A DNA stretch of 43,707 bases, taken from positions 1 through 43,707 of the forward strand of contig MCFE01000705.1 in NCBI GenBank assembly GCA_002104905.1, read 5' to 3'. Below, piece by piece: positions 2,812-27,102 of this stretch; positions within the stretch are counted from its first letter, which is position 1; each line of letters opens with the position of its first letter. The notes beneath the pieces are model-generated. The model did not search any database, was not told where the DNA came from, and worked only from the letters and a program-made list of their open reading frames with translations. This DNA is from Basidiobolus meristosporus CBS 931.73 (taxonomy: Eukaryota; Fungi; Basidiobolomycota). The translations under genes were made by a program, and so were the position numbers.

Positions 2812-3942
2812 TTACTGACAATTGTCATTACCATTCCCGGTGCCATTACCACCATTGTTTCCCGAATCATTAGCACTAGCACCGTTTCCACTGCCATCTC
2901 CATTACCCCCGTTGCCGTTACCACCGTTTCCGTTTCCAGAGTCATAAGCACCTGTTCCATTTTCACCAGTTTCATTGCCATCATCATTGCCTCCGTTTTT
3001 GTTACCAGCGTTGCTGTTTCCGGAGTCGTAAGCGCCAGCACCGTTGCTACCGTTTCCATTACCGCTATTACTATCTCTATTGCCAATGCTACCTTCCCCG
3101 CTACCACCATTACCATTACCATCTCCATTACCTCCGTTGCCGTTACCGCCGTTTTCGTTTCCACCATTTCCAGAGCCATAGGCACTGGCTTCGTTGCCAT
3201 CGTTTAAATAAATACCAGCTCCGTTCCCTCCATTCCCGTTGCCACCGTTGCTACTGCCGCTATTTCCATCTCCGTTGTCCCCATTTCCAGAGTCATAGGC
3301 GCCGGCTCCGTTACCTCCATTTCCATTACCACCGATTCCGTTTCCACCGTTTCCATTGCCGTCTTCATGGCCTCCACTTCCATCACCACTGTTGCCGTTT
3401 CCAGAGTCGTAAGCGCCAGCACCGTTTCCATTACCGCTATTATCATCTCGATTACCTTCATTGCCGTTACCGTTCCCGCCGTTTCCATTACTACCTCCAC
3501 TGCCAGAGTCATAAGCACCGGCTCCGCTACATCCATTTCCATTACTATCTCCATTACCGCCGTTTCTGTTGCCGCCATTTCCGTTTCCTCCATTACCACC
3601 ATTGCCGTTTCCAGAGTCATAAACACCAGCACCGTTACCGCCGTTGCCATTACCGCCGTTTTCATTACCATCATTGCCAGAGTCGTAAGCAGCAGCACCG
3701 TTACCACCATTTCCACCGCCTTGGTTTCCGTTGCCGCCATTTCCAGAGCCATAGGCACCAGCTCCGTTTCCTCCATTACCATTACCACCATTGCCGTTAG
3801 AATCGCCATTTCCACCATCAAATACATCCGTCACATCATAGGCCCCACCGCTTCTAGCTTGCAATCTCCGATCGAAAGCTGCAGCGTTGATTGCTGCCAA
3901 ACCAGAGAGGAAGCACAAGATTCTAGGAGCGGAGAATTTCAT
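2812..3942 (-). CDS. Secreted Gly/Asn-rich repeat protein, copy 1 (376 aa)
   Basis: Hydrophobic N-terminus MKFSAPRILCFLSGLAAINAAA, a dibasic RR, then GNG/GGNG repeats punctuated by GA-Y-D-SG units, ending in CQ. TATAAATA upstream. Paralogue at 4836-6089. Confidence 0.85.
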   Translation of the reverse strand: MKFSAPRILCFLSGLAAINAAAFDRRLQARSGGAYDVTDVFDGGNGDSNGNGGNGNGGNGAGAYGSGNGGNGNQGGGNGGNGAAAYDSGNDGNENGGNGNGGNGAGVYDSGNGNGGNGGNGNGGNRNGGNGDSNGNGCSGAGAYDSGSGGSNGNGGNGNGNEGNRDDNSGNGNGAGAYDSGNGNSGDGSGGHEDGNGNGGNGIGGNGNGGNGAGAYDSGNGDNGDGNSGSSNGGNGNGGNGAGIYLNDGNEASAYGSGNGGNENGGNGNGGNGDGNGNGGSGEGSIGNRDSNSGNGNGSNGAGAYDSGNSNAGNKNGGNDDGNETGENGTGAYDSGNGNGGNGNGGNGDGSGNGASANDSGNNGGNGTGNGNDNCQ

Positions 3943-4835: not shown

Positions 4836-6089
4836 TTACTGGCAATCGCCGTTACCGGTACCTGCACCACCATTACCATTCCCATTACCTCCGTTTCCAG
4901 AATCATAAGTACCAGCTCCATTTCCTCCATTGTCATTGCCACCACCATTGCCTCCGTTACCATTGCCATTTACATTTCCGCCACCGCTTCCAGTATCATA
5001 AGCACCAGCTCCATTGCCGCCATTGCCGTTACTATCTCCATTTTCTCCATTGCTATTGCCTTCACTACCGTTACCGTTACCATGGTTTCCAGAATCGTAG
5101 GCGCCAGCTCCCTTTCCTCCATTGTCATTGCCGTTGCCATTACCTTCGCTTCCGGAGCCATAGCCACCAGCTCCGCTGCCGCCATTACCGTTACCATCTC
5201 CATTGCCTCCGTTACCAGCTCCATTTCCTCCATTACCATTGCCGCCTCCGTTTCCAGTATCATAGACACCAGCTCTATTGCCGCCATTGCCCTTATTATC
5301 TCCATTTCCACCATTGCCATTGCCTCCGTTACCGTTACCATCATCGCCGTTTCCAGAATCGTAGGCACCAGCCCCATTTTCTCCATTGCCATTGCCACCA
5401 CCGTTGCCTCCGTTACCGTTATTATTGTCACTGTTTCCAGAGTCATAAACACCAGCTCCATTGCTTCCATTGCCACCGTTTCCAGAGTCATGGGCGCCAG
5501 CTCCGTTTCCTCCATTGTCATTGCCGTTGCCATTACCTTCGCTTCCGGAGCCATAGCCACCAGCTCCGCTGCCGCCATTACCGTTACCATCTCCATTGCC
5601 TCCGTTACCGTTACCATTACTATTACCGCCGTTTCCAAAATCGTAGGCGCCAGCTCCCTTTCCTCCATTACCATTGCCACCACCGTTGTCTCTATTACTG
5701 TTTCCAGAATCGTAGGTGCCAGCTCCATTTCCTCCGTTGCCATTACTACCATTACCATCTCCATTACCTCTATTACCGTTGCCATTACCACCATTTCCAG
5801 AGTCATAGGCGCCAGCTCCGTTCCCTTCATTACCTCCGTTGCCGTTACCGCTGTTTCCGTTGTCACCATTTCCAGAGCCATAGGTACCAGCTCCGTTTCC
5901 TCCTTTACCATTACTACCATTGCCGTTAGAATCGCCATTTCCGCCATTTCCACCATTTCCACCATCAAATACATCCGTCACATCATAGGCCCCACCGCTT
6001 CTAGCTTGCAATCTCCGATCGAAAGCTGCAGCGTTGATTGCTGCCAAACCAGAGAGGAAGCACAAGATTCTAGGAGCGGAGAATTTCAT
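4836..6089 (-). CDS. Secreted Gly/Asn-rich repeat protein, copy 2 (417 aa)
   Basis: N-terminal 44 aa identical to copy 1. Same GNG / YDSG repeat grammar, ending in DCQ. Confidence 0.85.
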   Translation of the reverse strand: MKFSAPRILCFLSGLAAINAAAFDRRLQARSGGAYDVTDVFDGGNGGNGGNGDSNGNGSNGKGGNGAGTYGSGNGDNGNSGNGNGGNEGNGAGAYDSGNGGNGNGNRGNGDGNGSNGNGGNGAGTYDSGNSNRDNGGGNGNGGKGAGAYDFGNGGNSNGNGNGGNGDGNGNGGSGAGGYGSGSEGNGNGNDNGGNGAGAHDSGNGGNGSNGAGVYDSGNSDNNNGNGGNGGGNGNGENGAGAYDSGNGDDGNGNGGNGNGGNGDNKGNGGNRAGVYDTGNGGGNGNGGNGAGNGGNGDGNGNGGSGAGGYGSGSEGNGNGNDNGGKGAGAYDSGNHGNGNGSEGNSNGENGDSNGNGGNGAGAYDTGSGGGNVNGNGNGGNGGGNDNGGNGAGTYDSGNGGNGNGNGGAGTGNGDCQ

Positions 6090-6945: not shown

Positions 6946-7479
6946 CTAGTAATTTGGCTCAGCTGGAGGGGCACTATCATCCGTATGAGAGTTTGTGACT
7001 GGGGGAACATCATCAGAATAAGGTTTTGGTTCAGGGGCTGGAGTTGTTGGAGGTTCTGGATTTACAACATAGATCTCAGATTTACCTGATCTGCCTGGCC
7101 TACCAGGTCTTCCTCGCTTTCCTTGTCTCCCCCGCTTCCCCTGTCTTCCACGTCTCCCACGTGGACCTCGTTTTCCAGCAGTTCCGTGCCCGTGCCCGCG
7201 TCCGTGTTTCTTTCCTTTGCTACTGTTTCCCAGATTTAGAGGACTGCCTTGAATTACGGGTACACTTCCGGCAATGCTATGAGAACTGAAGAGAGCGGGG
7301 CCACCACCGTACCGCTTTTCCAGGCGAATGACTTCAGGACCCGGCACCGCGGCTCCACCATCAGTAGTCCCCTGACTGGCAACAGCTGTGCTACCATCTT
7401 CAACTTCCTGACTAGCAACAGGATTGTGAGTAAGAGCAATCGCAACGCTGATCAACAGTAGGGATTTTATGATGGACAT
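6946..7479 (-). CDS. Secreted protein with a cationic collagen-like (Gly-X-Y)12 segment and Pro-rich acidic tail (177 aa from the ATG at 7479)
   Basis: Signal-like MSIIKSLLLISVAIALT. Kex2-like LEKR. GTA GKR GPR GRR GRQ GKR GRQ GKR GRP GRP GRS GKS at 7078-7185. The upstream 52 codons of the listed ORF (TTG/ATG extension) look like promoter/UTR. Confidence 0.7.
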   Translation of the reverse strand: MSIIKSLLLISVAIALTHNPVASQEVEDGSTAVASQGTTDGGAAVPGPEVIRLEKRYGGGPALFSSHSIAGSVPVIQGSPLNLGNSSKGKKHGRGHGHGTAGKRGPRGRRGRQGKRGRQGKRGRPGRPGRSGKSEIYVVNPEPPTTPAPEPKPYSDDVPPVTNSHTDDSAPPAEPNY

Positions 7480-8394
7480 GGAGGGCAGACTGGTGAGGAA
7501 ATGGATGTTCCAATCACTTTTTATGTACTGATTGTGAGTCGCTGCAGGAATGTTGCAATTAGTTTGATTGATACTTTCTATGCAGCCTAGAACTGAGCCT
7601 CTGTAACCCAGTGGTTGTTTTGGCATTTCAAACACTGTGTATCATCTCCATCCCTGTACAGTTGGTGTAGCCCTGGAATCACCGAATAATGATCCCTATG
7701 CTGTGATTTCATACTTGGCCAATCCTCCGGTTCGTTGCGGAAACAATGCAACGATGTTTGGTCAAGTCCTTTTACTATTCATCGTGTTTCATGTGATTAC
7801 CTTATTTTTACTGAATACCTTGAGAGGTAAAAGCGACTTTCTGTTACTGCAAAGACATCATAATCTCATCGTTTTCAAGGCTTCATCAAAGTGAAAGCAT
7901 TTTTCAATATTGGTCAAAGCCCGGTTCAAATCTGTATAGAGTTGTTAGTGTCTACTTGGAATGTATGCTGTCTACTAAAATTCAATTATCCCCATTAACA
8001 AAGTCGATCTACCAGGAGTATTGTAGTATAGAATGCATATAGTGAATAGTGTAAGTAATAACGAGTGAACTAACCAGACAATAGTAAGCCAGAACACATT
8101 GCACCAAACATCTACTCAAACAATGATCGTTTTTGGGTGCATATATCCACATTCCCGAGGAATACTGTCCACAGATACCGATTACTGGTTGATGGTTACG
8201 TGTGGCTGTTCGTATCATGGTGGCTAAACTGTCATAATCATGTATAATCTTAATCGTTCATTTGTTCCGACAAGGGAGCAAGTACCCAGTTGTATCAATA
8301 ATAGATTACCGCTTTAAACATGATTGATGAGAGTTGGTGATGAATTTATTCGAAAAGATTTATTTAACGAATTTTACAGTGACGTGATGGTAGA

Positions 8395-9285
8395 TTAAAA
8401 TTTGTTACCACAACGACCAATGGTGGCAGTGATGTATCCAGAGAAGTCAGTCACTGGCGAGAAAATCGTCATCTCCTGGCCAGCATTGGGTAGATTGAAG
8501 GGGGCAAGGTTGGTAGTAAAGTGGTGACTGTTGGGGAGTGCGTAGTACACATCCTGGACTTCAGGGAACCGCCTCAAGATTAACTCGGCCATACGGTACA
8601 TGGTGGCCTGAACGGAGGCAGAGTCATCGTGAGCGAACACATCCAGGGTGGTCTTGCGCACTCCTTCAAAGATGCGGTCAAATGGAACGTTCTCGACACC
8701 GATTGAGGTGTCGATGTTGTAGTGGGCCTTGACAGTGGTGGAGAAGATTCGGTCATCGGCATCCTGAAGGGTGGTGTTCTCGCAGAGATGGAAGTTGGTG
8801 AAGGAGGAGCCGGTGGTCTTCAACACAAGCAGCCCTTCCAATCCCGATTTGATGCTCACTCTGTCAGCAGCAACAGTAACCCAGGTCTCTCTGGTCTCAC
8901 TGCCATCACGGTAGAAGGAGTGAGGATGCGGCTCACCATTGACATTGATTCTAGCCCAACGTTGTTGGACAATGTGGACACTGGCATGGGTGACGTGGGA
9001 GTACTTGTCAACAAAGTGCTTGCCAAGCTCGTAAGCATAGCGCTCGATGGTCTGGACGTGGTCGGACTTCTTGGCAATAACGTAGCAAGTGTTCTTGACG
9101 GTGTCAGTGGGGACAACCATGCTGTTGTCAGCCTTGGTGTAGGCCTCTTTGAAGTCACCCTCAAGGAGCACTTGGCAGGTGAGCTCGACAATGTCGTTAT
9201 ATTGGGCGGTGTGACGGATAGCCTTGGTGACTCTGACCTTGGCCTTGCCATAGGCTTGACGCTTCAGCTCAGCTGCTCCGGACAT
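8395..9285 (-). CDS. uox: Urate oxidase (uricase) A, 296 aa
   Basis: Uricase motifs YGKAKVR, VPTDTVKNT, VLKTTGSSF, DRIFST, SASVQATMY, LPNSH. TATATAAA at 9332-9339. Confidence 0.95.
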   Translation of the reverse strand: MSGAAELKRQAYGKAKVRVTKAIRHTAQYNDIVELTCQVLLEGDFKEAYTKADNSMVVPTDTVKNTCYVIAKKSDHVQTIERYAYELGKHFVDKYSHVTHASVHIVQQRWARINVNGEPHPHSFYRDGSETRETWVTVAADRVSIKSGLEGLLVLKTTGSSFTNFHLCENTTLQDADDRIFSTTVKAHYNIDTSIGVENVPFDRIFEGVRKTTLDVFAHDDSASVQATMYRMAELILRRFPEVQDVYYALPNSHHFTTNLAPFNLPNAGQEMTIFSPVTDFSGYITATIGRCGNKF

Positions 9286-9766
9286 TTTGTAAGATAGTAG
9301 ATAATTACTACTATCTACGACCTAGTACCACTTTATATACGAGCAGCGGTATTTGCTTCCATCTCCACACATATAGCTTCGGACTGGCGCTAAGACCATA
9401 TTCTAGTCACCTTTAGTCCAGCTCCCAAAATCTGAGTCTAGACTTAGATCAGTAGCTAGTTATGCCAGCTGAATAGATCAGATTTGACTTATTGGACTGG
9501 CGACACGGCAGTTTATGTCACACAGCTCATCTGTGATAGGAGCGAAATTAAAGGATGTGGAGTAGATCTCAATCGTTGAGAATATCTATGTTGGGTGGCA
9601 ACTTGATTTACCCTTCGACGATAGGAGGACAAGTGCGAACAAAGGCCGAGACTACCAGAGAACCGACCCAGCATTATGCTAATGCAAGCCAACTATGTAC
9701 TATATAATCGGGAGAAACCCTCATCACTATTTCACACAGAGCATTAGCCAAACACCCATCCACAAA
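9286..9766. promoter_or_regulatory. Shared divergent (bidirectional) promoter region of the two uricases
   Basis: 481 bp between two outward-facing ATGs. Outward-facing TATA boxes at 9332-9339 (-) and 9701-9707 (+). Confidence 0.65.
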
Positions 9767-10660
9767 ATGGCCAACACCTCCAATGCCTACCTAAAGAAGC
9801 AAGCCTACGGCAAGACCAAGGTTCGCATCACCAAGGTCATCCGCCACACCAAGAACTGGCATGATGTTGTCGAGCTCACTGCTCAAGTCCTCCTCGATGG
9901 CAAGTTCGAGACCTCCTACACCGAGGCTGACAACTCTGTTGTTGTCCCAACTGACACTGTCAAGAACACCCTCTACGTCCTTGCCAAGAAGTCTGCGAAT
10001 GTCCAGACCATCGAGCGCTTTGGTTACGAGATTGGCCAACACTTCATCAACAGATACTCCCACGTCGATGATGTCTTCATCAAGCTCATCCAACACCGCT
10101 GGACCCGTGTTGAGATCGATGGCCAACTCCACCCTCACTCCTTCCTCCGTGATGGCGATGAGACTAGACGTGTCGAGATGACAGTCTCTCGGGATGGAAA
10201 GGTGTCCATTGAGTCTCGCCTCAAGGATCTCCTTGTGTTGAAGTCCACTGGTTCTGCCTTCACCAACTTCCACCGCTGCGAGTACACTACCCTTCAAGAC
10301 GCCACTGACCGAATCTTCTCCACTAGTGTCGATGCCAAGTGGACCTACAACCTCGAGAAGTCCAAGATCGAAGAGATTCCATTCGACGAGATTGCCAACA
10401 GTGTTCGTGAGATCACCCTCAGCACCTTTGCCACTGACGACTCCGCCTCGGTGCAAGCCACCATGTACCAGATGGGTGAGAAGGTGTTGGTTCAGAATGT
10501 GGATGTTCGCGAGATCAGCTATGCACTCCCGAACAAGCACTACCTCAGTATCAACCTGAAACCCTTCAACCTTCCCAACGAAGGCAAGGACATGAACATT
10601 TTCCAACCCATTAGTGACCCCTCTGGCTACATTACCGCTACTATTGCACGTGGGCAATAA
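9767..10660 (+). CDS. uox: Urate oxidase (uricase) B, 297 aa from the ATG at 9767
   Basis: YGKTKVR, VPTDTVKNT, VLKSTGSAF, DRIFST, SASVQATMY, LPNKHY. Context cacaaaATGG. TATATAA at 9701. AATAAA ~50 nt after the stop. Confidence 0.95.
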   Translation: MANTSNAYLKKQAYGKTKVRITKVIRHTKNWHDVVELTAQVLLDGKFETSYTEADNSVVVPTDTVKNTLYVLAKKSANVQTIERFGYEIGQHFINRYSHVDDVFIKLIQHRWTRVEIDGQLHPHSFLRDGDETRRVEMTVSRDGKVSIESRLKDLLVLKSTGSAFTNFHRCEYTTLQDATDRIFSTSVDAKWTYNLEKSKIEEIPFDEIANSVREITLSTFATDDSASVQATMYQMGEKVLVQNVDVREISYALPNKHYLSINLKPFNLPNEGKDMNIFQPISDPSGYITATIARGQ

Positions 10661-11690: not shown

Positions 11691-11942
11691 ATGAAACTTC
11701 TCACCCTCGTTGGACTTTTCGGCGTCGCCAACGCCGGCACCGCCTACTACTGGTGCTCCAAAACCCGCAACTCCTGCAACGCTGGCATCGATCCCGTCAA
11801 CACCGAATACTGCGCGGTCACCGTCCTCAACCGCGGGGTTACCCAATGGGGAGCCCTCGCCGACTGGAGCCAGTCCACCTTCAACAAGTTCCAATCCTGT
11901 TGCCACAGTGGCAACAAGGGCGGCTGCTACAGCAAGAACTAA
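11691..11942 (+). CDS. Small secreted cysteine-rich protein (83 aa, 6 Cys), effector/toxin-like
   Basis: Signal-like MKLLTLVGLFGVANA. Cys at 22, 29, 41, 70, 71, 79. C-ending codon bias like the uricases. TATAAAAG at 11599. AATAAA at ~11988. Confidence 0.75.
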   Translation: MKLLTLVGLFGVANAGTAYYWCSKTRNSCNAGIDPVNTEYCAVTVLNRGVTQWGALADWSQSTFNKFQSCCHSGNKGGCYSKN

Positions 11943-14450: not shown

Positions 14451-15099
14451 GTGAATTTATAAAAAGCAGGAATCGGCCTTGGTACCTGCATACTCTATCA
14501 TCATTAAACATTCCAACATGGCTTCCCAACAAACCGTCAAGGTCTGCTGCTGTGGCGAGAACTGCCAGTGCGAGCAATGCCAATGCCAAAAGGCCGAAGT
14601 GAAGGCCACCTGCTCTTGCAAGGACAACTGCACCTGCGAGAAGTGCGAGTGCGCCAAGGCCGTTGAAGTGCCACCCTGCGAGTGCAAGGGCGGTTGCAAG
14701 TGCGTCAACTGCCAAGGCAAGAAGCAACCCGGATGCAACTGTGGCGAGGGGTGCAAGTGCGGCTCCGCCTGTAAATGCGGCGAGGCCAAGAAGAGCAAGT
14801 GCTGCTGCGGGGACGACTGCAAGTGCGAGTCGTGCGAAGGCCAAAGTGGCAAGTGCTGCTGTGGTGACAACTGCAAGTGCACCAAATGCCCCACCCATTA
14901 AATGCGCATTACAATGTATATCTCCAAAGTAACCCTCTACACTTGTACTATTTCATTCCACACCAATAAATTCTACTTCGCAATCATAGTATTTGACGTT
15001 TTCCTGTGTTCGCTAGGCCAGAGTGTTTGGCTTTTTCATGTTCCATCGAGTTGTTCGATTGTGAATTGGTTTTGAATCCAGTGACATACAAAACGATGC
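14451..15099 (+). repeat. Segmental duplicate (MT1 plus flanks) of 23231-23879
   Basis: Colinear at constant offset 8780 from gtgaat through aaacgatgc. CDS differs at 6 of 384 nt. Weaker homology continues to ~15340 / ~24140. Confidence 0.85.
14518..14901 (+). CDS. Metallothionein-like MT1, 127 aa, 36 Cys, six modules
   Basis: MASQQTVKVCCCGENCQCEQCQC...CCCGDNCKCTKCPTH, no aromatic residues. TATAAAAA 60 bp upstream of the ATG. AATAAA downstream. Confidence 0.9.
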   Translation: MASQQTVKVCCCGENCQCEQCQCQKAEVKATCSCKDNCTCEKCECAKAVEVPPCECKGGCKCVNCQGKKQPGCNCGEGCKCGSACKCGEAKKSKCCCGDDCKCESCEGQSGKCCCGDNCKCTKCPTH

Positions 15100-15328
15100 G
15101 TTTCATACATATTGTGTCGGTTTAATGCACTATGACTGAACATATTATCTGCTACCAGGAAGTAAAGGGGACAAGGTTCGGTAACTGAGGCGTAGAAGAA
15201 AATTTCAATAACAATAGGGCTTCAATGGCGAAGAGCAGGTTTGGAACTAATTTATTATGACAAACACTTCCAAGGAAATTTACAAGGTACAATGGCGGAA
15301 GTAATGAGGGTTAAGTCTTTCTATTGAA

Positions 15329-15502
15329 TTAGTGAGTAGGGCGCTTGGTGCACTTGTTCTTCTTGGCCTCGCCGCATTTACAGGCGGAGCCGCACTTGCA
15401 CCCCTCGCCACAGTTGCATCCGGATTGCTTCTTGCCTTGGCAGTTGACGCACTGGCAGTTCTCGCCACAGCAGTAGATCTTGACGATTTGTCGGGAAGCC
15501 AT
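15329..15502 (-). CDS. MT2, internally deleted MT (57 aa, 12 Cys); intact ORF or pseudogene
   Basis: MASRQIVKIYCCGENCQC|VNCQGKKQSGCNCGEGCKCGSACKCGEAKKNKC|TKRPTH with two in-frame deletions. TATAAAAA 60 bp upstream (15555-15562). Confidence 0.7.
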   Translation of the reverse strand: MASRQIVKIYCCGENCQCVNCQGKKQSGCNCGEGCKCGSACKCGEAKKNKCTKRPTH

Positions 15503-15586
15503 GTTGGAATGTTTAATGATGATAGGATATGCAGGTACCAAGGCCGATTCCTGCTTTTTATAAATTCAATTTCTCAACCGGACCGA

Positions 15587-15766
15587 TCAACCGTCCTTGC
15601 ACTCGCAAGGCGGTGCCTCCGCGGTCCTGGCGCACCCACATTTCTCGCAGGTGCAGTTATCTTTACAAGGGCATGTGACTTTCACTTCGACCCTTTGGCA
15701 TTGGCATTGTTCGTATTGACAATTGTCGCCACAGCAACGGATCATGGCGGTTTGTTGGGAAGTCAT
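15587..15766 (-). pseudogene. MT3, 3'-truncated MT (59 codons, 13 Cys) fused to the MT2 promoter
   Basis: MTSQQTAMIRCCGDNCQYEQC...PPCECKDG*. The stop is created at the junction with MT2 upstream sequence. TATAAATA 60 bp upstream. Confidence 0.7.
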
Positions 15767-16598
15767 GTTGGAATGTTTAGTGGTGACAGAGTATGCAGGT
15801 GCCAAGGCCGATTCCTGCTATTTATAAATTCACTTTCCACTCCGGACCAACGGATCACCCATACCTCCTAATAGCGTAAATCATACCGTACCACTTAACC
15901 AGCCTGGTTACCTCCGCGCCAGTACGCTTTGTATCGATTCCTACGGAACTAGATGACCCGAAAACCAAATGGGCGATAGTGGTAAATATACTTTCACTAA
16001 TTTCGAATGAATCCTGTGTGGTGACTGGAATGCGATATGATCTATATGCAACTCATCGGACTTTCCTTACGAATGAAGCTGCCAACACATGCCGGTTGTA
16101 CTCAACACACCCTGCGAAGTCAAACTCTTCAGGTTACGCAATGATTCAAAAAGGTGATTAGGTGTCGAATCAAACCACCTCCCAGAAATGTACATCACAG
16201 ATCGGCTGGCTTCCACTCTAGGCACTACTTCACACGCTTCTCCGATCATATTCTGGATCCGGCTTTTGGCTTTACTTTCGATGCGGATCAAACATGATTC
16301 TACTACTCGAAGCCTCGTATACTGTGTAACACTCGATAAGCTTAGGGATTCATCCGTTGCGTTATTTTAGCTATTGGGGGAGATTCACATATCGTCAGTT
16401 TGTAGCATTGTGGAGAATTATTCGTGAAGAACCGCGTTTGTCACTAAGAGGAGAGCGATTGGGCCGGCCTTGATCGGAGGCGCGATATACGCCATTGGTC
16501 AGCATGAATGTCCGTTGGTGCGGGTGAGTATGTGAAAGCATATAAAAAGCAGGAATCGGCCTTGGTACATGCATACTCTTCTGAATAAACACCGCAAC

Positions 16599-16950
16599 AT
16601 GGCCTCCCAACAAACCGCCATGATCCGTTGCTGTGGCAACAATTGTCAATACGAACAATGCCAATGCCAATGCCAAAGGGTCGAAGTGAAAGTCACATGC
16701 CCTTGTAAAGATAACTGCACCTGCAAGAAATGTGAGTGCGCCAGGACCGCGGAGGCACCGCCTTGCGAGTGCAAGGACGGTTGCAAGTGCATCAACTGCT
16801 AGGGGAAAGCAATCCAGCTGAAAATGCGACGAGATCAAGAAGAATAAGTGTTGTTGCGGGAGCGACCGCGATTGTGAGTCGTGCGAAAGCCATAGTGGTA
16901 CCTGCTGTTGTAACAACATTTGCGAGTGCGCCAAGTGTCCCACCCATTAA
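16599..16950 (+). pseudogene. MT4: open 67-aa, 17-Cys ORF (16599-16802) followed by a decayed 3' half
   Basis: CAG>TAG at 16800. The downstream homology has a frameshift and a TGA but ends in CCC ACC CAT TAA at 16950. TATAAAAA at 16541. Confidence 0.7.
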
Positions 16951-17402
16951 TCACTCACCGTGCGGTATATCTCCATAAGATATCTTCCAAGCTTGTGCTT
17001 TGAAATTCCAAATAAATCAATTCCGCTGGACTATCATCGTTATTGCGTTATTGGTTTATTCTTTATTCCTGTAGGTTGGGTCTCCACTTGGATGGGTGAA
17101 AATCACTTATTTCGGAGTTCATTGAGGAAACTTGTGATAAGCAACGTGAAGTTCCCCATAATCTACAATCCGACATTCTTCCGCAGTGCATTGGGCATGA
17201 GGCAGAGATTCTCTCTGAATGTTGTGCAGAATATGATGAACTCAAGGTTCTGTGACTAAGATCTACAAGCACGCAATAGTGGGAACCATTGATAGTGTGG
17301 GGAAAGAAGGGGCAAAGGGTAGATTTGTAGCCAATTTATTATACCATATAGTTCGAGAATATTTACAAGATATGATGGGAGTGTATGCAGGGTTAGGCTT
17401 TT

Positions 17403-17534
17403 CTAATATTTGTGGGCAGCGCACTTGATGCACTGGTTGCTCTGGCCTTCGCCTTCGCCTCCACCCCCACCTTTGAGCATTGGAAACGTTCGTCACACCA
17501 ACAATTCCTGACTGTTTTTTTTTTGGGAAGCCAT
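17403..17534 (-). pseudogene. MT5, heavily decayed MT remnant
   Basis: TATAAAAAGCAGGA 60 bp upstream of ATGGCTTCCCAA. A poly-A run causes a frameshift. Ends TGC ATC AAG TGC GCT GCC CAC AAA TAT TAG. 3' flank resembles those of MT2/MT12. Confidence 0.7.
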
Positions 17535-17734
17535 ATTGAATAGTTTGTGAAGAACTGAGCATGCACGCATCAAGACCGAATCCTGCTTTTTATACAATCA
17601 CCCTCCCAGCTGGAACAACACATCTCACAGCATCCTCTAATGGCGTAAATCTCGCATAAACTCATCAACAGTCCAATTGATCTTCTTGTGGCCATAGCAG
17701 GCCAAACATGCTATATTCCTCAAAGACAATAACT

Positions 17735-18137
17735 CCCTATCTGACCGTTGCATCATACCTGCTTGTAACCTAACTTATGGTATGCATTAAACGTCCATCT
17801 ACCACTCGCAGTAAAGCCGCGTCCATTGGGTTACTATGGAAAAGTCCAGAAATTTGCCTAAAGGAGATGCTTCATCGATCCAATGCGTGATTTTTGCCGT
17901 TGGGGATGATCACTTACTAATCGTGGATTGAACATGACGAAAAATCAACGCCGATGCTATCATGTGACGAATTTCTCGGAGCAGAGGAGAGCGATTGGAC
18001 CGGCCTTGATCGGAGGCGCGATATACGCCATCGGTCAGCATGGGTGATCCATTGGTGCGGGTGAGCAAGTGAAAGCATATTAAAAGCAGGAATCGGTCTT
18101 GGTACATGCATACTCTATTCTGAATAAACACCGCGAC
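17735..18137 (+). repeat. Near-identical upstream duplicate of 19742-20144 (MT6/MT8 promoters)
   Basis: Colinear at offset 2007 from ccctatctgaccgttg to the ATG, with only scattered substitutions. Confidence 0.85.
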
Positions 18138-18485
18138 ATGGCCTCCCAACAAACCGTCAAGATCTGCTGCTGTGGCGAGAACTGCCAGTGCGAGCAATGC
18201 CAATGCCAAAAGGTCGCAGTGAAGGCCACCTGCTCTTGCAAAGACAACTGCACCTGCGAGAAGTGCAAGTGTACCAAGGCTGTTGAAGTGCCACCCTGCG
18301 AGTGCAAGGGCGATTGCAAGTGCGCCAACTGCCAGGGTAAGAAAAAATCCGGATGCAAATGCAGCGAGGCCAAGAAGAGCAGATGTTGCTGTGGGGACAA
18401 CTGCAAGTGTGAGTCGTCCGAAGGCCAGAGTGGCAAGTGCTGCTGTGATGATAACTGCAAATGCACCAAGTGCCCCACCGATTAG
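18138..18485 (+). CDS. MT6, 115 aa, 31 Cys (short module 4)
   Basis: Open ORF MASQQTVKICCC...KCPTD, lacking the 12-aa CNCGEGCKCGSA-equivalent segment. TATA variant TATTAAAA at 18078. Confidence 0.85.
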   Translation: MASQQTVKICCCGENCQCEQCQCQKVAVKATCSCKDNCTCEKCKCTKAVEVPPCECKGDCKCANCQGKKKSGCKCSEAKKSRCCCGDNCKCESSEGQSGKCCCDDNCKCTKCPTD

Positions 18486-19250
18486 CGGCCCATCAAAATG
18501 CATCTCTCCAAAACAACTCTCCACACTTGTACTATTACCTTCAAAACCAATAAATATTCCTTAGTAACCTGCTGTTTGCTATACTTATCTGTATGATTTT
18601 TTACATATGGTGGGGATTTTTCTGCTCACGGAATCATTTTGAATGATGTAACAAGCCACCCAGTTTTTCCGTAACTACGACCCGGGTTCGTCTGGCAGCA
18701 AAGTGTATGTTTACTGTAGAATCCAAACGAGCTTTTCCAGTTACCTTATACACACGATACCCCTAACAATCGAATTCACTCTAGTCAGGCTACGCACATC
18801 TTGCATAAATTCTAGTGGGTAGTTGTTGAAAGGAACCGCATCCCTGAAGTCAAATGGCCTCCAGGCAAGAGCCTAGTACACGCACTACTCGACATGTTAT
18901 CCCCGGATGAAATTTTTTCTGGCGATCTTTACCTGGAGCCAGCGAGTAACCCTACTAGTTGAGACGACCGAATGTACTACCTCAACTCGCAGTAGAACCT
19001 CACCTAATGCGCAGCCATTATCAGAGAAACGCCTAGAAATTTGATTTAAGGGGTAGCTTCATCGATCGCACGCGATGATTTAGCTATTGAGGTGTATTAC
19101 CTACCAATTATAATTGATCATTAGGTACGGCGAGGTTTACGCCATTGGAGGAATTCGCGAGATGCGTTATTCCGACTTGGAAAACGGTTTTATAAAAAGC
19201 AGGAATCTGGCTTGGTACCTGCATACTCTATCATCAATAAACTACTCAAC

Positions 19251-19580
19251 ATGGCCTCCCAACAAACCATCAAGATCTGCTGCTTTGGCGAGAACTGCCA
19301 GTGCGAGCGATGCCAATACCGAAAGGTCGAAGTGAAGGCCACCTGCTCTTGCAAAGATGACTGTACCAGTGAGAAATGCGAGTGCGCCAAGACCATGGAA
19401 GTACCATCCTGCGAGTGCAAGGGCAGTTGCAAGTGCGTCAGCTGCCAGGGTAAGAAGCAATCTGGATGTAACTGTGGCAAGCAACGCAAGTTCGGCTTCG
19501 CCCGCCAATGCGGTGAGGCCAAGGAGAGCACGGACTGTTGTAGCGATAATTGCAGATGCGCCAAATGCTCCACTCATTAG
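19251..19580 (+). CDS. MT7, 109 aa, 23 Cys, diverged with several Cys substitutions
   Basis: Open ORF. C>F, C>Y, C>S, C>R substitutions relative to MT1 and one C-terminal module missing. TATAAAAA at 19191. Confidence 0.75.
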   Translation: MASQQTIKICCFGENCQCERCQYRKVEVKATCSCKDDCTSEKCECAKTMEVPSCECKGSCKCVSCQGKKQSGCNCGKQRKFGFARQCGEAKESTDCCSDNCRCAKCSTH

Positions 19581-20144
19581 ACGCTCGATTTAATGTATAT
19601 CTCCAGGATAACCCTCGACATTTGTACTATTTCGTTTTGAATTAATAAAGTCCATTTGGTAATCATACATGCTATGTTTTACTCACTCAGTAAACTCATT
19701 TTTTTCAGGTAAATTTGGCGGAGTCATGTCGAAGAATAATCCCCTATCTGACCGTTGCATCATACCTGTTTGTAACCTAACTTTTGGCATGCATTAAACG
19801 TCCATCTACCACTCGCAGTAAAGCCGCGTCCATTGGGTTACTATGGAAAAGTCCAGAGATTTGCCTAAAGGAGATGCTTCATCGATCCAATGCGTGATTT
19901 TTGCCGTTGGGGATGATCACTTACTAATCGTGGATTGAACATGACGAAAAGTCAAAGCCGATGCTATCATGTGACGAATTTCTCGGAGCAGAGGAGAGCG
20001 ATTGGACCGGCCTTGATCGGAGGCGCGATATACGCCATTGGTCAGCATGAGTGATCCATTGGTGCGGGTGAGCAAGTGAAAGCATATAAAAAGCAGGAAT
20101 CGGTCTTAGTACATGCATACTCTATTCTGAATAAACACCGCGAC

Positions 20145-20528
20145 ATGGCCTCCCAACAAACCGTCAAGATCTGCTGCTGCGGCGAGAACTGCCAGTGCGA
20201 GCAATGCCAATGCCAAAAGGTCGAAGTGAAGGCCACCTGCTCTTGCAAGGACAACTGCACCTGCGAGAAGTGCGAGTGCGCCAAGGCCGTTGAAGTGCCA
20301 CCCTGCGAGTGCAAGGGCGGTTGCAAGTGCGTCAACTGCCAAGGCAAGAAGCAATCCGGATGCAACTGTGGCGAGGGGTGCAAGTGCGGCTCCGCCTGTA
20401 AATGCGGTGAGGCCAAGAAGAGCAAGTGCTGCTGCGGTGATGACTGCAAGTGTGAGTCGTGCGAAGGCCAAAGTGGCAAGTGCTGCTGTGGTGACAACTG
20501 CAAGTGCACCAAATGCCCCACCAATTAG
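20145..20528 (+). CDS. MT8, 127 aa, 36 Cys
   Basis: Full six-module ORF, 9 nt different from MT11. TATAAAAA at 20085. AATAAA at ~20592. Confidence 0.9.
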   Translation: MASQQTVKICCCGENCQCEQCQCQKVEVKATCSCKDNCTCEKCECAKAVEVPPCECKGGCKCVNCQGKKQSGCNCGEGCKCGSACKCGEAKKSKCCCGDDCKCESCEGQSGKCCCGDNCKCTKCPTN

Positions 20529-20634
20529 AAGGGCATCATAATGTACATCTACAAAATAGCCATCTACACTTGTACTATTTCATTTCACACCAATAAATTC
20601 TACTTCGCAATCATATTGTTTGACGTTTAAGTAC

Positions 20635-20853
20635 CAGTGCGCCAAGACCGTGGAAGTGCCACCTTGTGAGTGCAAGGATGGTTGTAAGTGCGTGAGATGG
20701 CAGGGTAGGAAACAATCCGGATGCAAATGCGGCGAGGCCAAGAAGTACAGGTGCTGCTGCGGGGGAGACTGCCAGTGCGAGTCATGTGAAGGCCAGAAGG
20801 GCGAGTGCTACTATGGTGACAGCCACAAGTGTACTAAGTGTCTCACTCTTTAA
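20635..20853 (+). pseudogene. MT9, 5'-truncated MT fragment (no ATG, no promoter)
   Basis: Begins at ...CAKTVEVPPCECKDG, joined directly to the MT8 3' flank. Several Cys lost (C>W, C>Y, C>H). Confidence 0.75.
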
Positions 20854-21989
20854 ACTTCCACCATAAAGTATATCTCAAATTAGCATTTTACACATGTACT
20901 ATTATATTCCCAACTAATAGATCTCTCTTGACAATCACTCCTTGTGCAATATTCCGGTGTTCCGCATACTTTTTCCCTCTATCCTTTGAGTTCTATGCGT
21001 CAGGTTACGCAATCCATTGAACATTTTGGTGATAGATTGTTGCACGATTGCGCTTCCCTGCAATCATCTTTTTCCACAGACTGGCTCTCGTTCACCTTAC
21101 GACTTTACATACCTCTCCAGGTTGCAACTTGCTTGGAATGGCTGCTTTATTGATCCCTTGCGTTATTTTAGCTATTGGGGAATGCACCAACCATTGGTCC
21201 GACACTACAAGATTTGTCATGCTCTTGCGTTTACTTGATTGTATGATTCTTGTCACGATTCCGTTTCTGAATCAAGTGGGTGAAGTGTGTATCTGAAGTC
21301 CATATATCGTGATATGGTGAGTGTTAAAGAATCACAGAATCCAGGCGAATATCTTAATGGTTCGGGGTTAAAAGGGTCACCGAACTCCGCTTTCTCCCCT
21401 CCGCCGCTATACTTCAAAAAGAATCCAGTTGATCTGGGTGATTCTGTACCTCTATTATTTATAAGGTAATGGCGCAGTGACTTCCATTGCTTTGGAGTAT
21501 TACTCAATTATTGGTGGGCGTATATTCATTTCGTCGGAGTTCGCTCTCGTCAGGTTACGTATCTCAGCAATCAAGTATGGATCGAATATTCCCCGTATGT
21601 ACAATACCTGAAACCAGCTTGTAGCTTGAATGCTTAGGCGCTTTCACTACTCGTGGCATGGCCTCAATTGATGCGCAATCATAACCAGAGAAAAGCCAAG
21701 ATATTTGCTTAAAGGAGCTGCTTCAATTAACGCTTGCGTTATTTTAGCCACTGGGGAACGTCAGCTGCGGATCACCAATGGATATTGATGATGACGATTT
21801 GGGTGGCATCTCGCGTGATGTAATTTCTGAGCCGGAGAGTAGAGTCTTTGAATAGAACATTTGGTACAGCGAGATTTACGCCATTGGGAGGGAATAGTGA
21901 GATGCGTCGTTCCGACTTGAAAATGAATTTATAAAAATCTGGAATCTGGCTTGGTATTTGCATACTCTATCATCAATAAACTACTCAGC

Positions 21990-22265
21990 ATGGCTTCCCA
22001 ACACACCGTCAAGATCTGCTGCTGCGGCGAGAACTGCCAGTGCGAGCAATGCCAATGCCAAAAGGTCGAAGTGAAGGCCACCTGCTCTTGCAAGGACAAC
22101 TGCACCTGCGAGAAGTGCGAGTGCGCCAAGGCCGTTGAAGTGCCACCCTGCGAGTGCAAGGGCGGTTGCAAGTGCGTCAACTGCCAGGGCAAGAAGCAAT
22201 CTGAATACCAATGTGGCGAGGTTAAGAAAAGCAGTTGCTGCTGCGGTGACAGTGGTAAATGTTAA
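21990..22265 (+). CDS. MT10, 91 aa, 23 Cys, shortened C-terminus
   Basis: First three modules are essentially identical to MT8/11/12. The 3' end is deleted and frameshifted (…GDSGKC*). TATAAAAA at 21930. Confidence 0.8.
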   Translation: MASQHTVKICCCGENCQCEQCQCQKVEVKATCSCKDNCTCEKCECAKAVEVPPCECKGGCKCVNCQGKKQSEYQCGEVKKSSCCCGDSGKC

Positions 22266-23297
22266 AGTGCCTTATCCATCAAATACTCATTGTAACGAAT
22301 ATCTCCCGCCAAATCCTCCACACTCGTACTATTAATTTCTAAGCCAATAAATCCCGTTAGACAATCATCAGCTTTGTATTATTCCTGTGTTTCATACGAT
22401 TACTTGTTCGGTCTTTATTCAGCTCGGCTGAATTGCCAACTTCCGAAACCCGTAGGAAGCATCGTCAAGACCTCGTAAATTACGATGAAGGATTCGTGTG
22501 CGGCCCAATGGACCTATATTAGGGAACTCCGACGAACTTCATACCGCCTTTCAGAATGTGAAGCGCTCCAGGTTATATGGCTGAGTGATAGAGTGAAGCG
22601 TCGATAATTAAAAGAACAAAAGGCCAAAGCTCAGACTTGAAATGAATTTTTCAAGCCGAACACTTCCGGAGAGATTTCCAAGGCACGACGGCGAAGTAAT
22701 GAGGGATGTGTTTTCTAATGCATTTAAGGGTGGGGCCCCAATACAAATGGATTTCATACGGCCATGAGGCTACGCATTCCATCCCAAATGTGCAGTGGTA
22801 AAGTGTCGTGAGGCTTCGTGCCCTAGAAGTCGTCTTCTTCACCGGGGTGGTTACTACTACAGACATGACTTCAGATGCTTTTCCCTGAGGAAAACGTGGT
22901 TTCCGATCTTTGCCTGGAACCTGCTTGTAGTCTTACTGTTGGGGTGTATTAATCCTGATGCTTCTACTCGCAGTAAAGCCTCATCTACAGTGTAACCATG
23001 GAATAGCCTAGAAATTTGCTTAGAATCGCTATATTAATTGGTTGCGTCGTTTTAGCCATTGGATAGAATTACGTACCAATCGTCTGTTGGTGATGATGAA
23101 AAATGATCGCGTCCGATATCATGGGATATATCCATGGAGCAGAGTAGATGAGTGATTGGATTGATCATAAGGTACGGCGAGATTTACGCCATTGGAGGAA
23201 TTGGCGAGATGCGTTGTTCCGGCCTGGATAGTGAATGTATAAAAAGCAGGAATCGGCCTTGGTACCTGCATACTCTATCATCATTAAACATTCCAAT

Positions 23298-23681
23298 ATG
23301 GCTTCCCAACAAACCGTCAAGATCTGCTGCTATGGCGAGAACTGCCAGTGCGAGCAATGCCAATGCCAAAAGGTCGAAGTGAAGGCCACCTGCTCTTGCA
23401 AGGACAACTGCACCTGCGAGAAGTGCGAGTGCGCCAAGGCCGTTGAAGTGCCACCCTGCGAGTGCAAGGGCGGTTGCAAGTGCGTCAACTGCCAAGGCAA
23501 GAAGCAATCCGGATGCAACTGTGGCGAGGAGTGCAAGTGCGGCTCCGCCTGTAAATGCGGTGAGGCCAAGAAGAGCAAGTGCTGCTGCGGGGACGACTGC
23601 AAGTGCGAGTCGTGCGAAGGCCAAAGTGGCAAGTGCTGCTGTGGTGACAACTGCAAGTGCACCAAATGCCCCACCCATTAA
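23298..23681 (+). CDS. MT11, 127 aa, 35 Cys
   Basis: Full six-module ORF with one C>Y (CCY). TATAAAAA at 23238. Confidence 0.9.
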   Translation: MASQQTVKICCYGENCQCEQCQCQKVEVKATCSCKDNCTCEKCECAKAVEVPPCECKGGCKCVNCQGKKQSGCNCGEECKCGSACKCGEAKKSKCCCGDDCKCESCEGQSGKCCCGDNCKCTKCPTH

Positions 23682-24131
23682 ATGCGCATTACAATGTATA
23701 TCTCCAAAGTAACCCTCTACACTTGTACTATTTCATTCCACACCAATAAATTCTACTTCGCAATCATAGTATTTGACGTTTTCCTGTGTTCGCTAGGCCG
23801 GAGTGTTTGGCTTTTTCATGTTCCATCGAGTTGCTCAATTATGAATTGATTTTGAATCAAGTGACATAAAAAACGATGCTTCCCAAGGATTTGCTATACA
23901 ATTTGGACTAGTTTATTAGACTACGGTAGCGCAGCCAGGCGAACATGCTATTAACTACTAGGAAGTGAAGAGTACAAGGTTCGATGACTGAGGCGTAGAG
24001 GGAGATTTCAATAATAATAGGGCTTCAATGGCAAAGAGTAGATTTGGAACTAATTTATTATGTCCAATACTTCCGGAGAAATTTACAAGATACAATGGTG
24101 GAAGTAATGAGGGTTGGGTATTTCTAATGAA

Positions 24132-24515
24132 TTAGTGGGTAGGACACTTGGTGCACTTGCAGCTGTCACCACAGCAGCACTTGCCGCTCTGACCTTCGCA
24201 CGACTCACACTTGCAGTCGTCCCCGCAGCAGCACTTGCTCTTCTTGGCCTCACCGCATTTACAGGCGGAGCCGCACTTGCACTCCTCGCCACAGTTGCAT
24301 CCGGATTGCTTCTTGCCTTGGCAGTTGACGCACTTGCAACCGCCCTTGCACTCGCAGGGTGGCACTTCAACGGCCTTGGCGCACTCGCACTTCTCGCAGG
24401 TGCAGTTGTCCTTGCAAGAGCAGGTGGCCTTCACTTCGACCTTTTGGCATTGGCATTGCTCGCACTGGCAGTTCTCGCCACAGCAGCAGATCTTGACGGT
24501 TTGTTGGGAAGCCAT
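24132..24515 (-). CDS. MT12, 127 aa, 36 Cys
   Basis: Full six-module ORF convergent with MT11. Unrelated 5' leader with TATATAAA at 24575-24582. Confidence 0.9.
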   Translation of the reverse strand: MASQQTVKICCCGENCQCEQCQCQKVEVKATCSCKDNCTCEKCECAKAVEVPPCECKGGCKCVNCQGKKQSGCNCGEECKCGSACKCGEAKKSKCCCGDDCKCESCEGQSGKCCCGDSCKCTKCPTH

Positions 24516-25103
24516 GTTGTTAATGATAGGTGATACGTGGATTATGAATGCCCTACACTTCCCACCAAGATTCATTTATATACCATCCTATGAATGGGAG
24601 AATTCATGCGTCATATTATTGCACCAATCGCATAAACCCCTTCCAGGTGGTCGAAATTTCTTCTACGAATCAATCAGACCAAATCCATATTCGTGCCACC
24701 AAACAATCTCGCTGCCGCCCTCCAATTGGGGTGAGGGGATTCTTATTTGGATGAAAAGATGGCCCTTACAGTACAATGGGAATCGGTAACCCCTCTCCCC
24801 CCCTGGCCAAATGCTGCATGGGTAGTGTAATACTGCTTCGTGAGTATATTTGGTTATTTCAGTGCATCCTTGATGATGATGATCCGGTCCAGAACTCGTA
24901 GGGTTCGTTCGGGTTGATCAACACTGGTTTGTGCAACGGGAAATCAGGTTTCATTTATTTACGATGGTCAAGGGACTTTAGCCTGTTTGTTTCTACATAA
25001 CGGCCGATGGACCATGACAGAAAAGGTACATACAAGGTTAACGCCCTAAGGGAGGGGGCAGGGTGATTGGCCCGCTTTTCTCCACGGTGATTGTGCCGGT
25101 GTA

Positions 25104-25313
25104 TTACTTTCTTGAGCAGTTGGTGCATTCACAGTTGGGGCCGCAGGTGCACTTGGGAGTCTCATATTTCTTGTCGCATTTGCAGTCGGAGCAGGTGCAA
25201 TTCTCTTTACACCCGCAGACCAACTTGGCCTCTACCTTGTGGCAGTGGCAATCATTGCACTGGCAGTTCTCGCCGCAGCAGCACAGTTTCTTGGGTTTTC
25301 CGCTGGACTCCAT
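25104..25313 (-). CDS. MT13, divergent three-module MT, 69 aa, 18 Cys
   Basis: MESSGKPKKLCCCGENCQCNDCHC-CGCKENCTCSDCKC-CTCGPNCECTNCSRK, with the same 7/6/5 Cys spacing as modules 1-3 of MT1. TATAAA at 25394-25399. Confidence 0.85.
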   Translation of the reverse strand: MESSGKPKKLCCCGENCQCNDCHCHKVEAKLVCGCKENCTCSDCKCDKKYETPKCTCGPNCECTNCSRK

Positions 25314-26691: not shown

Positions 26692-27102
26692 ATGACCTTT
26701 TCCACCATCAACACCAACCCGACGGGATCCCTTTGGCCCACCCAGGGCACCGAAATCACATACGAGGGGATTCAAACCCTCATCGCTCATCCCCCGGAAA
26801 CCCGAGGTATCTTGCTGATAGACGTCCGGGGGAGGGAGGAATTCCTTCAGGGGCATATCCCAACCTCGGTGAACTTACCCTTGGATGAGCTGGAGAAGGC
26901 CCTCCACCTGTCTGATGAGGAGTTCTTTCGAACCTACCAATTCCAACCCCCTAAGCCCCACTCGAGGATTGTCGTCAGCTGTCGCTCGGGCAGTCGTAGC
27001 ACCCGGGCCCATAAGTGGCTACTGGAGGCCGGGTTCCAGTCCGTCCTCAACTACCCTGGCGGCTGGATCGAATTCTCCACCAGGCAACCTGCTCGAGAGT
27101 GA
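26692..27102 (+). CDS. Single-domain rhodanese / thiosulfate sulfurtransferase (GlpE/RDL1/TSTD-like), 136 aa
   Basis: LIDVR...E...GHIPTSVNLP, active loop SCRSGSRS, NYPGGW. The listed ORF start at 26623 is TTG; the first ATG is 26692, 49 bp after TATAAA (26643). Confidence 0.9.
   Translation: MTFSTINTNPTGSLWPTQGTEITYEGIQTLIAHPPETRGILLIDVRGREEFLQGHIPTSVNLPLDELEKALHLSDEEFFRTYQFQPPKPHSRIVVSCRSGSRSTRAHKWLLEAGFQSVLNYPGGWIEFSTRQPARE

Follow-up and report, generated by a model that had tools for sequence, protein, structure and literature searches.

The contig MCFE01000705.1 of Basidiobolus meristosporus CBS 931.73 (assembly GCA_002104905.1) raises the question of what kind of protein is encoded by a dense series of short, cysteine-rich open reading frames (ORFs), and how such a series evolves. 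The window analysed here, 43,707 nt in length, is the entire contig, and the surroundings of the series are eukaryotic and fungal in style. The ORF listing, a scan of the Cys fraction, blastn and tblastn comparison of a 127-amino-acid (aa) copy with the window, and pairwise DNA alignments revealed 13 homologous metallothionein-like (MT) loci between positions 14518 and 25313, eight on the forward and five on the reverse strand. The array spans about 11 kb, and its genes are intronless. The names MT1 to MT13 are our own and follow map order except for MT13. The original prediction had listed 13 loci in both orientations with their lengths and Cys counts, and every checkable detail of that description proved accurate. 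As argued below, we consider it likely that the array is a cluster of cytosolic metallothionein genes without introns that is restricted to one lineage and evolves through the birth and death of its members.

Metallothioneins serve to buffer or detoxify metal ions, and their operational definition in terms of sequence comprises a small size with a high Cys content (about 15–30%), characteristic Cys motifs, few aromatic residues, and little His. Cys makes up 28% of the long array products (36 of 127 residues in MT1, MT7, and MT11) and 18 of the 69 residues of MT12, with the Cys arranged as CxC, CxxC, and CC(C). Their earlier designation as metallothionein-like thus holds by each of these features. 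The intact reference copy MT7 (20145–20528, forward strand) encodes 127 aa with 36 Cys (28%), 19 Lys, 13 Gly, 11 Glu, and 9 Gln, lacks Phe, Trp, Tyr, Leu, Arg, and His altogether, and contains three CCC, twelve CxC, and five CxxC motifs. As a hydrophobic N-terminal run is missing, the protein is predicted to have no signal peptide and not to be secreted. MT1, MT5, and MT11 share with MT7 the complete lack of Phe, Trp, and Tyr, and a Cys-to-Tyr change accounts for the one Tyr of MT10. His is restricted to none or one, C-terminal, residue in the 127- and 115-aa copies; MT12 has two His and one Tyr. The AlphaFold2 model provided no confident fold (predicted local distance difference test score of 47), which fits an apo-metallothionein with a metal-dependent fold but is not diagnostic.

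The Cys residues form six variants of one unit, (CCC or CxC)-x3-CxC-x2/3-C(xC), joined by linkers rich in Lys, Glu, and Gly. DNA comparison aligns the CCC unit at the N-terminus with each of the two at the C-terminus (78–89% identity over 27–46 nt). MT12 (25104–25313, reverse strand) is a divergent three-module paralogue of 69 aa with 18 Cys that aligns to units 1–3 of the long form only, at 52–54% identity. It keeps all of its module Cys despite a synonymous divergence (dS) of about 1.1. Since MT12 comprises units 1–3 and nothing further, the long form appears to have grown out of a short ancestor through internal duplication; in the simplest reading, a three-unit ancestor was lengthened at its C-terminus, with MT12 as a candidate for the ancestral short form. 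As a separate observation, the region 25251–25290 of MT12 contains a 27-nt segment, TGCTGCTGYGGCGAGAACTGCCAGTGC, that is identical to the same region in MT1, MT5, MT7, and MT11, although dS is about 1.1 elsewhere. This identity could reflect a local conversion tract or a constrained site.

Comparison of the 127- and 115-aa copies gave ratios of nonsynonymous to synonymous substitution rates (dN/dS) of 0.05–0.17 at dS values of 0.015–0.41, the substitution pattern of genes under purifying selection. The lowest dS was obtained for MT1 and MT10 (0.015), and MT5 showed a dN/dS of 0.11–0.17 against the 127-aa copies. Between the four intact copies there are 62 differences, 40 of them at third codon positions, and neither stops nor frameshifts are present. 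The GC content at third codon positions (GC3) is 0.79 in the intact copies, and their preferences for TGC, AAG, GAG, AAC, and CAA are the same as in the neighbouring uricase genes. Damaged copies show a GC3 of 0.62–0.69, and a retrotransposon on the same contig is at 0.38, far below the host genes. Codon bias and purifying selection point to expression of the intact copies, albeit only indirectly.

Judged from sequence, about six of the loci are likely to be functional: MT7, MT12, MT1 (14518–14901, forward strand; intact, 127 aa, 36 Cys), MT10 (23298–23681, forward strand; intact, 127 aa, 35 Cys), MT11 (24132–24515, reverse strand; intact, 127 aa, 36 Cys), and MT5 (18138–18485, forward strand; 115 aa, 31 Cys). 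MT11 is convergent with MT10 and has unrelated flanks. MT5 differs from the long form by the absence of one 12-codon segment, a gap of 36 bp that is in frame and has Cys codons at both edges. The status of two further loci is uncertain. MT2 (15329–15502, reverse strand), convergent with MT1, is a 57-aa in-frame deletion form with 12 Cys and an intact promoter; DNA alignment revealed two internal in-frame deletions and a Cys-to-Arg change near its end. MT9 (21990–22265, forward strand; 91 aa, 23 Cys) is truncated at its 3′ end, with homology stopping at 22221.

The other five loci show the hallmarks of decaying or dead genes. MT3 (15587–15766, reverse strand; 59 aa) has a coding region that breaks off at codon 59 and has become joined to the MT2 promoter; its closest copy is MT4 (dS 0.03), and its GC3 is relaxed. 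The pseudogene-like MT4 (forward strand) is open from 16599 to 16802 (67 aa) with homology continuing to 16951; it contains a 6-bp insertion and a premature TAG after codon 67, beyond which C-terminal homology goes on out of frame. MT6 (19251–19580, forward strand; 109 aa, 23 Cys) is a degenerating copy with an 18-codon deletion in which 13 Cys were lost, with Phe, Tyr, and Arg in their place. MT8 (20617–20853, forward strand) is a 5′-truncated remnant that covers codons 38–126, has no ATG or promoter, and carries Tyr, His, and Trp in place of Cys. Finally, MT13 (about 17400–17594, reverse strand) consists of a core promoter and an ATG at 17534 followed by a degenerate coding start. In total, visible damage affects seven of the 13 loci. 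As many copies are truncated, frameshifted, or Cys-depleted, much of the variation in module number is decay, and the cluster evolves by birth and death. The variation in module number that had been listed as a characteristic of the array therefore stands in part: MT5 and perhaps MT2 are clean in-frame variants, and the differences seen in MT3, MT4, MT6, MT8, MT9, and MT13 are due to decay. The non-functional loci would be decaying products of unequal recombination.

The array is built from duplication units of 0.5–0.9 kb, and the convergent pairs MT1/MT2 and MT10/MT11 have a 933-bp unit in common (91% identity). On their 3′ side, MT1 and MT10 have a common flank (93%), and the MT1 promoter is homologous to others only downstream of about −85. 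Similarity in the coding regions and in the flanks does not follow the same pattern. Comparing MT7 with MT5, the 300-bp 5′ flanks are 98% identical and the coding regions 92%; conversely, the MT7 coding region is 97–98% identical to those of MT1 and MT10, whereas the 5′ flanks reach only 77%. A discordance is also seen in MT11, whose coding region is 96–97% identical to MT1, MT7, and MT10 although both flanks are unalignable: homology begins 4 bp before the ATG and stops at the stop codon. This discordance between coding region and flank indicates that the long copies are homogenised by gene conversion or by recombination limited to their coding regions. Gene conversion would thereby keep their coding regions near-identical while promoters and 3′ flanks differ. 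The promoter mosaicism that had been predicted is clearly visible in these data, as coding regions are 96–98% identical while the flanks differ.

The promoters themselves show a conserved core. Allowing up to three mismatches, the 17-nt core promoter TATAAAAAGCAGGAATC occurs ten times, as compared to 0.21 expected occurrences. The TATA box starts exactly at −60 in nine loci, namely MT1, MT2, MT3, MT6, MT7, MT9, MT10, the remnant MT13, and MT5, where it reads TATTAA; counting these last two, the number given in the original prediction is reproduced. The TATA box of MT4 is found at −58, and MT11 and MT12 have other promoters, that of MT12 with two GCCATTGG elements. The ATG context is conserved, and blocks equivalent to the MT7 promoter are present upstream of nine other loci. 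In the MT7 promoter (19735–20144, forward strand), which may serve as an example, the motif SCSATTGG is located at −147 and −111, TATAAAAAGCAGGAATC at −60, and an A at −3. SCSATTGG, which resembles a reverse CCAAT box, occurs 12 times in the promoters as compared to about two expected from its density in the window. It is located upstream of MT4, MT5, MT6, MT7, MT9, MT10, MT11, and MT12, twice in the case of MT12, and lies near −110 in six promoters, including the otherwise unalignable promoter of MT11. On these grounds SCSATTGG is a candidate cis-regulatory site, with no known factor. Stress-response (STRE), YAP, and heat-shock (HSE) elements are not enriched in the array promoters.

Is the family known from elsewhere? 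Word-index searches with MT7 and a core-profile search based on three modules returned only P0001, the product of MT6 from this very window, and the same was true for a full HMMER pass with MT7 over 1.84 billion protein representatives; MT12 as a word-index query gave zero candidates. No relatives were detected in JGI metagenome contigs by protein profile and a conserved 27-nt pattern, or in prokaryotic genomes, which were searched as a test for gene transfer. Exact-sequence look-ups of MT1, MT7, MT10, MT11, and MT12 gave matches confined to MCFE01000705.1. It should be noted that this absence of relatives covers protein sets, metagenome contigs, and prokaryotic genomes, no eukaryotic genome collection having been searched by tBLASTn. 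MT6 is the only one of the 13 loci present in the collection of 15 billion proteins, which draws on NCBI and UniRef. Given that one of 13 loci has entered that collection, any relatives that other fungi possess would probably be missing from annotation as well, which limits the negative result. The expectation that annotation misses such short genes is largely met by the finding that a single degenerate copy has entered the public protein set.

The comparison with described families was similarly unproductive. MT12 scored 23.6 bits and the long forms 13.8–15.8 bits against the Pfam family Metallothio_PEC (PF02068), below its threshold of 31.8 bits. Besides PF02068, hmmscan at E values up to 10 gave only a trace of PF01439 (E = 8.9) and no other Pfam metallothionein family, fungal and ciliate families included. 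The nearest weak similarities are to Metallothio_PEC, to the wheat Ec domain (2kak), and to a plant PEC metallothionein cluster, the nearest one in the Atlas (0.82); all of these are metallothioneins. Matches to Nab2 and to an EGF domain in PDB sequence and profile searches were rejected as spurious. The literature searched contained no report linking metallothioneins with Basidiobolus, and they do not come up in any of the 15 best-ranked matches on early-diverging fungal phyla. The suggestion of an undescribed family is borne out insofar as no relatives were detected and no Pfam metallothionein threshold was reached.

Several of these observations weigh against metallothioneins as the products of the array. 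No known metallothionein family is matched above threshold, and the assignment consequently rests on composition and Cys spacing and not on homology. At 127 aa the long copies exceed the classical size limit, albeit within the range of accepted long metallothioneins (PMC4755600, PMC4862169). The canonical metal-response (MRE), copper-response (CuRE), ACE1/Cu-fist, and zinc-response (ZRE) elements are not enriched in the array promoters, and the metal preference is unreadable from the sequence, with both CCC and CKC motifs present. Moreover, in a six-frame check based on the ratio of nonsynonymous to synonymous differences per site (pN/pS), only two frames look constrained, to an equal degree: the sense frame (0.12) and an antisense frame with the same wobble positions (0.16). 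The lack of homology to any characterised family would also be expected if the products were Cys-rich proteins of another kind, such as structural or secreted proteins held by disulfide bonds, nucleic-acid binders resembling zinc fingers, or a reserve of cysteine, sulfur, or redox equivalents. The best PDB profile match, to the CCCH zinc fingers of Nab2 (E = 0.002), could be cited for the second of these. We regard such proteins as unlikely: a signal peptide or hydrophobic segment is absent, adjacent CCC and CxC triplets at 28% Cys are at odds with disulfide frameworks, few Cys are paired in the Nab2 alignment and the His required by such fingers is missing from it, and the scarcity of aromatics together with Lys/Glu-rich linkers are typical metallothionein traits. 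The low antisense pN/pS, together with antisense ORFs of 110–200 aa that are open across most copies, might be taken to mean that the coding strand is the opposite one and that the long His/Leu/Gln/Ser/Pro-rich or Ala/Leu-rich antisense ORFs are the real genes. This can hardly be credited, as the wobble-sharing frame starts with GTG or TTG and never with ATG in every copy listed, and the in-register Ala/Leu-rich frame has a pN/pS of 2.4. The antisense frame is open only because the sense protein is nearly devoid of Tyr and prefers C-ending codons. Conversely, three features identify the sense strand: its TATA box at −60, its conserved start and stop codons, and the exact coincidence of the limits of MT11 homology with the ends of the sense coding region.

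With the sense strand established, the number of live genes has to be considered. Seven damaged loci and a conversion process that homogenises coding regions are what would be seen if the array were largely or wholly a graveyard, its low dN/dS values being due merely to recent conversion by a single live copy, on this contig or a different one. The evidence makes this improbable: most differences between intact copies are synonymous and none is a stop or a frameshift, codon bias is stronger in intact than in damaged copies, the TATA box and ATG context are retained by the intact copies, and MT12 has preserved its full set of module Cys across a large synonymous distance. A related concern is that near-identical tandem units are hard to assemble, so that the array or its copy number might be an artefact of collapsed or expanded repeats or of stitched haplotigs. 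However, the copies differ by 2–30%, with dS values between 0.015 and more than 1, and are distinct in their flanks and orientations; the array is internal to the contig, with unique genes for uricase and rhodanese on either side, and the exact look-ups of MT1, MT7, MT10, MT11, and MT12 found this contig only. As the copies differ and sit between unique genes, they represent distinct loci and not sequence repeated by the assembler. B. meristosporus CBS 931.73 was moreover sequenced with PacBio (PMC7466969), and we judge an assembly artefact to be very unlikely.

A cluster of metallothionein genes is thus the reading that we pursue in the comparison with known systems. Its nearest analogues in function and architecture are the Cd-metallothioneins (CdMTs) of Tetrahymena and the long Cu-thioneins of Cryptococcus and Tremella, and by sequence it is a member of neither group. 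The Tetrahymena CdMTs (family 7a) measure 99–181 aa with about 24–30% Cys, as compared to 127 aa and 28% here, and they likewise combine abundant CCC motifs, strict modules derived from internal duplication, and several paralogues per species (PMC4862169). However, these are ciliate and not fungal proteins without detectable sequence similarity to the array products. Their modules are C2-3X6 units ending in CXCCX, unlike the (CCC/CxC)-x3-CxC-x2-C unit of the array, and a 13-locus array of mixed orientation is not described for them (PMC4862169). CnMT1 and CnMT2 of Cryptococcus neoformans and TmMT of Tremella mesenterica are long fungal metallothioneins of 122, 183, and 257 aa, respectively, in which tandem amplification has acted on a Cys unit akin to the 7-Cys pattern of Neurospora and Agaricus; as in Basidiobolus, they were mis-annotated or missed by automatic annotation (PMC4755600). 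In contrast to the array genes, they are from basidiomycetes, TmMT has 10 exons, and no gene array was reported (PMC4755600). Their unit is a spacer-separated 7-Cys box, whereas the array genes are intronless, contain CCC, and lack a strict 7-Cys box.

The strict 7-Cys pattern of family 8, CxC-x5-CxC-x3-CxC-x2-C (PMC4755600), is in fact absent from all copies. The sub-pattern formed by its last five Cys occurs twice, in addition to a version with an x8 first spacer. The module CxC-x3-CxC-x2-C had been equated with the last five Cys of the Neurospora protein, and it does agree with the Neurospora/Agaricus pattern as printed in PMC4755600. Plant Ec/PEC metallothioneins (PF02068; wheat Ec-1, 2kak) share the spacing CxC-x3-CxC-x2-CxC ... 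CxC-x3-CxC-x2-C over about 40 residues, although scores remain below threshold (23.6 vs. 31.8 bits; PDB E = 6). Ec metallothioneins have conserved His ligands; nothing corresponds to these in the 127-aa copies, where His is limited to a single C-terminal residue at most. Convergence probably accounts for the resemblance. Yeast Crs5 (family 13) has the same length as MT12 (69 aa) and a TVKIC start, but the homology hinted at by that start was rejected (BLASTP E = 0.09; hhalign probability 18.8%). In Saccharomyces cerevisiae, metallothionein capacity is raised by tandem amplification of CUP1, which encodes a 61-aa protein and forms identical head-to-tail repeats. The Basidiobolus units, by comparison, are diverged and placed in both orientations, with mosaic promoters and many decayed copies. 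Long modular metallothioneins in Tetrahymena, Cryptococcus, Tremella, molluscs, and tunicates, as well as tandem arrays, are already known (PMC4862169, PMC4755600, PMC8476144), and lineage-specific, modular, even de novo metallothioneins are a recurrent theme in molluscs, tunicates, and chelicerates. The array would accordingly extend a metal-buffering system of known kind to a further fungal lineage, and does not represent a new kind of system.

How such a system would operate may be sketched from metallothioneins that have been studied in other organisms. Clusters would form in which Cu(I), Zn(II), or Cd(II) is enclosed by the thiolates, and the ratios found in characterised proteins would predict approximately 12 divalent ions or approximately 25 Cu(I) per molecule. 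Capacity would arise from the many Cys per molecule combined with several expressed copies, and near-identical copies would increase it further through gene dosage. We infer metal binding, the metal in question, expression, the benefit of dosage, and the high capacity named in the original prediction in this way, whereas the loci, the selection on them, the mosaic structure, and the lack of relatives are direct results of the analysis. In Tetrahymena, CCC motifs are of the Cd type and CKC motifs of the Cu type (PMC4862169). As most characterised fungal metallothioneins are Cu-thioneins (PMC4755600), the preference may lean slightly towards Cu(I).

The remainder of the contig provides context. 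A head-to-head pair of uricase genes (8395–9285, reverse strand; 9695–10660, forward strand) lies just upstream of the array. Directly after it, a single-domain rhodanese with the active-site loop CRSGSRS is encoded at 26692–27102 on the forward strand. It is of the sulfurtransferase type and not an Acr2-like arsenate reductase, and its adjacency to the array is probably coincidental. Long ORFs of retrotransposons occupy the reverse strand further downstream, with a copia-type element at 35567–38134 (integrase, RVT_2) and a gypsy-type element at 39340–43668 (RVT_1, RNase H, integrase, and an ORF with DUF4100). Two paralogous genes at 2812–3942 and 4836–6089 on the reverse strand encode secreted proteins with Gly/Asn-rich repeats, 376 and 417 aa long. 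The two proteins agree in all of their first 44 residues, the signal-like start MKFSAPRILCFLSGLAAINAA among them, contain repeats such as GNGNGGNGAGAYDSGNG, and have no Pfam match. An ORF at 6946–7635 (reverse strand) combines a signal-like hydrophobic stretch with a strongly basic, collagen-like tract, GKRGRQGKRGRPGRPGR, with a sub-threshold match to the Pfam family Collagen. The forward-strand ORF at 11691–11942 encodes 83 aa with an N-terminal signal-like sequence and 7 Cys, and is a called gene in the table of the collection. Telomere repeats are absent from the contig.

Taken together, the observations allow for a broader but distinctly tentative picture, which we consider possible though not probable. 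The array would be an orphan family restricted to Basidiobolus, either arisen de novo or diverged beyond recognition, and would represent the largest and most dynamic metallothionein complement known from a fungus. Conversion would fix the coding regions while the promoters diversify, such that the copies differ in their response to metals or life stage, with SCSATTGG as the site of a metal-responsive regulator and the whole as an adaptation to herptile gut and dung. Irrespective of this picture, the underlying biology is expected and not surprising, and would gain in interest only if genome-wide copy number, regulation, or metal specificity turned out to be unusual. The array is a concrete case of short Cys-rich genes escaping annotation, with one degenerate locus out of 13 in the public protein set, and a compact example of concerted coding evolution beside diverging promoters. 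The series of lengths, 69, 115, and 127 aa, offers a natural test of unit number versus metal capacity. As a candidate metallothionein family from the Zoopagomycota, it would be another independent case of long metallothioneins made from repeated Cys units.

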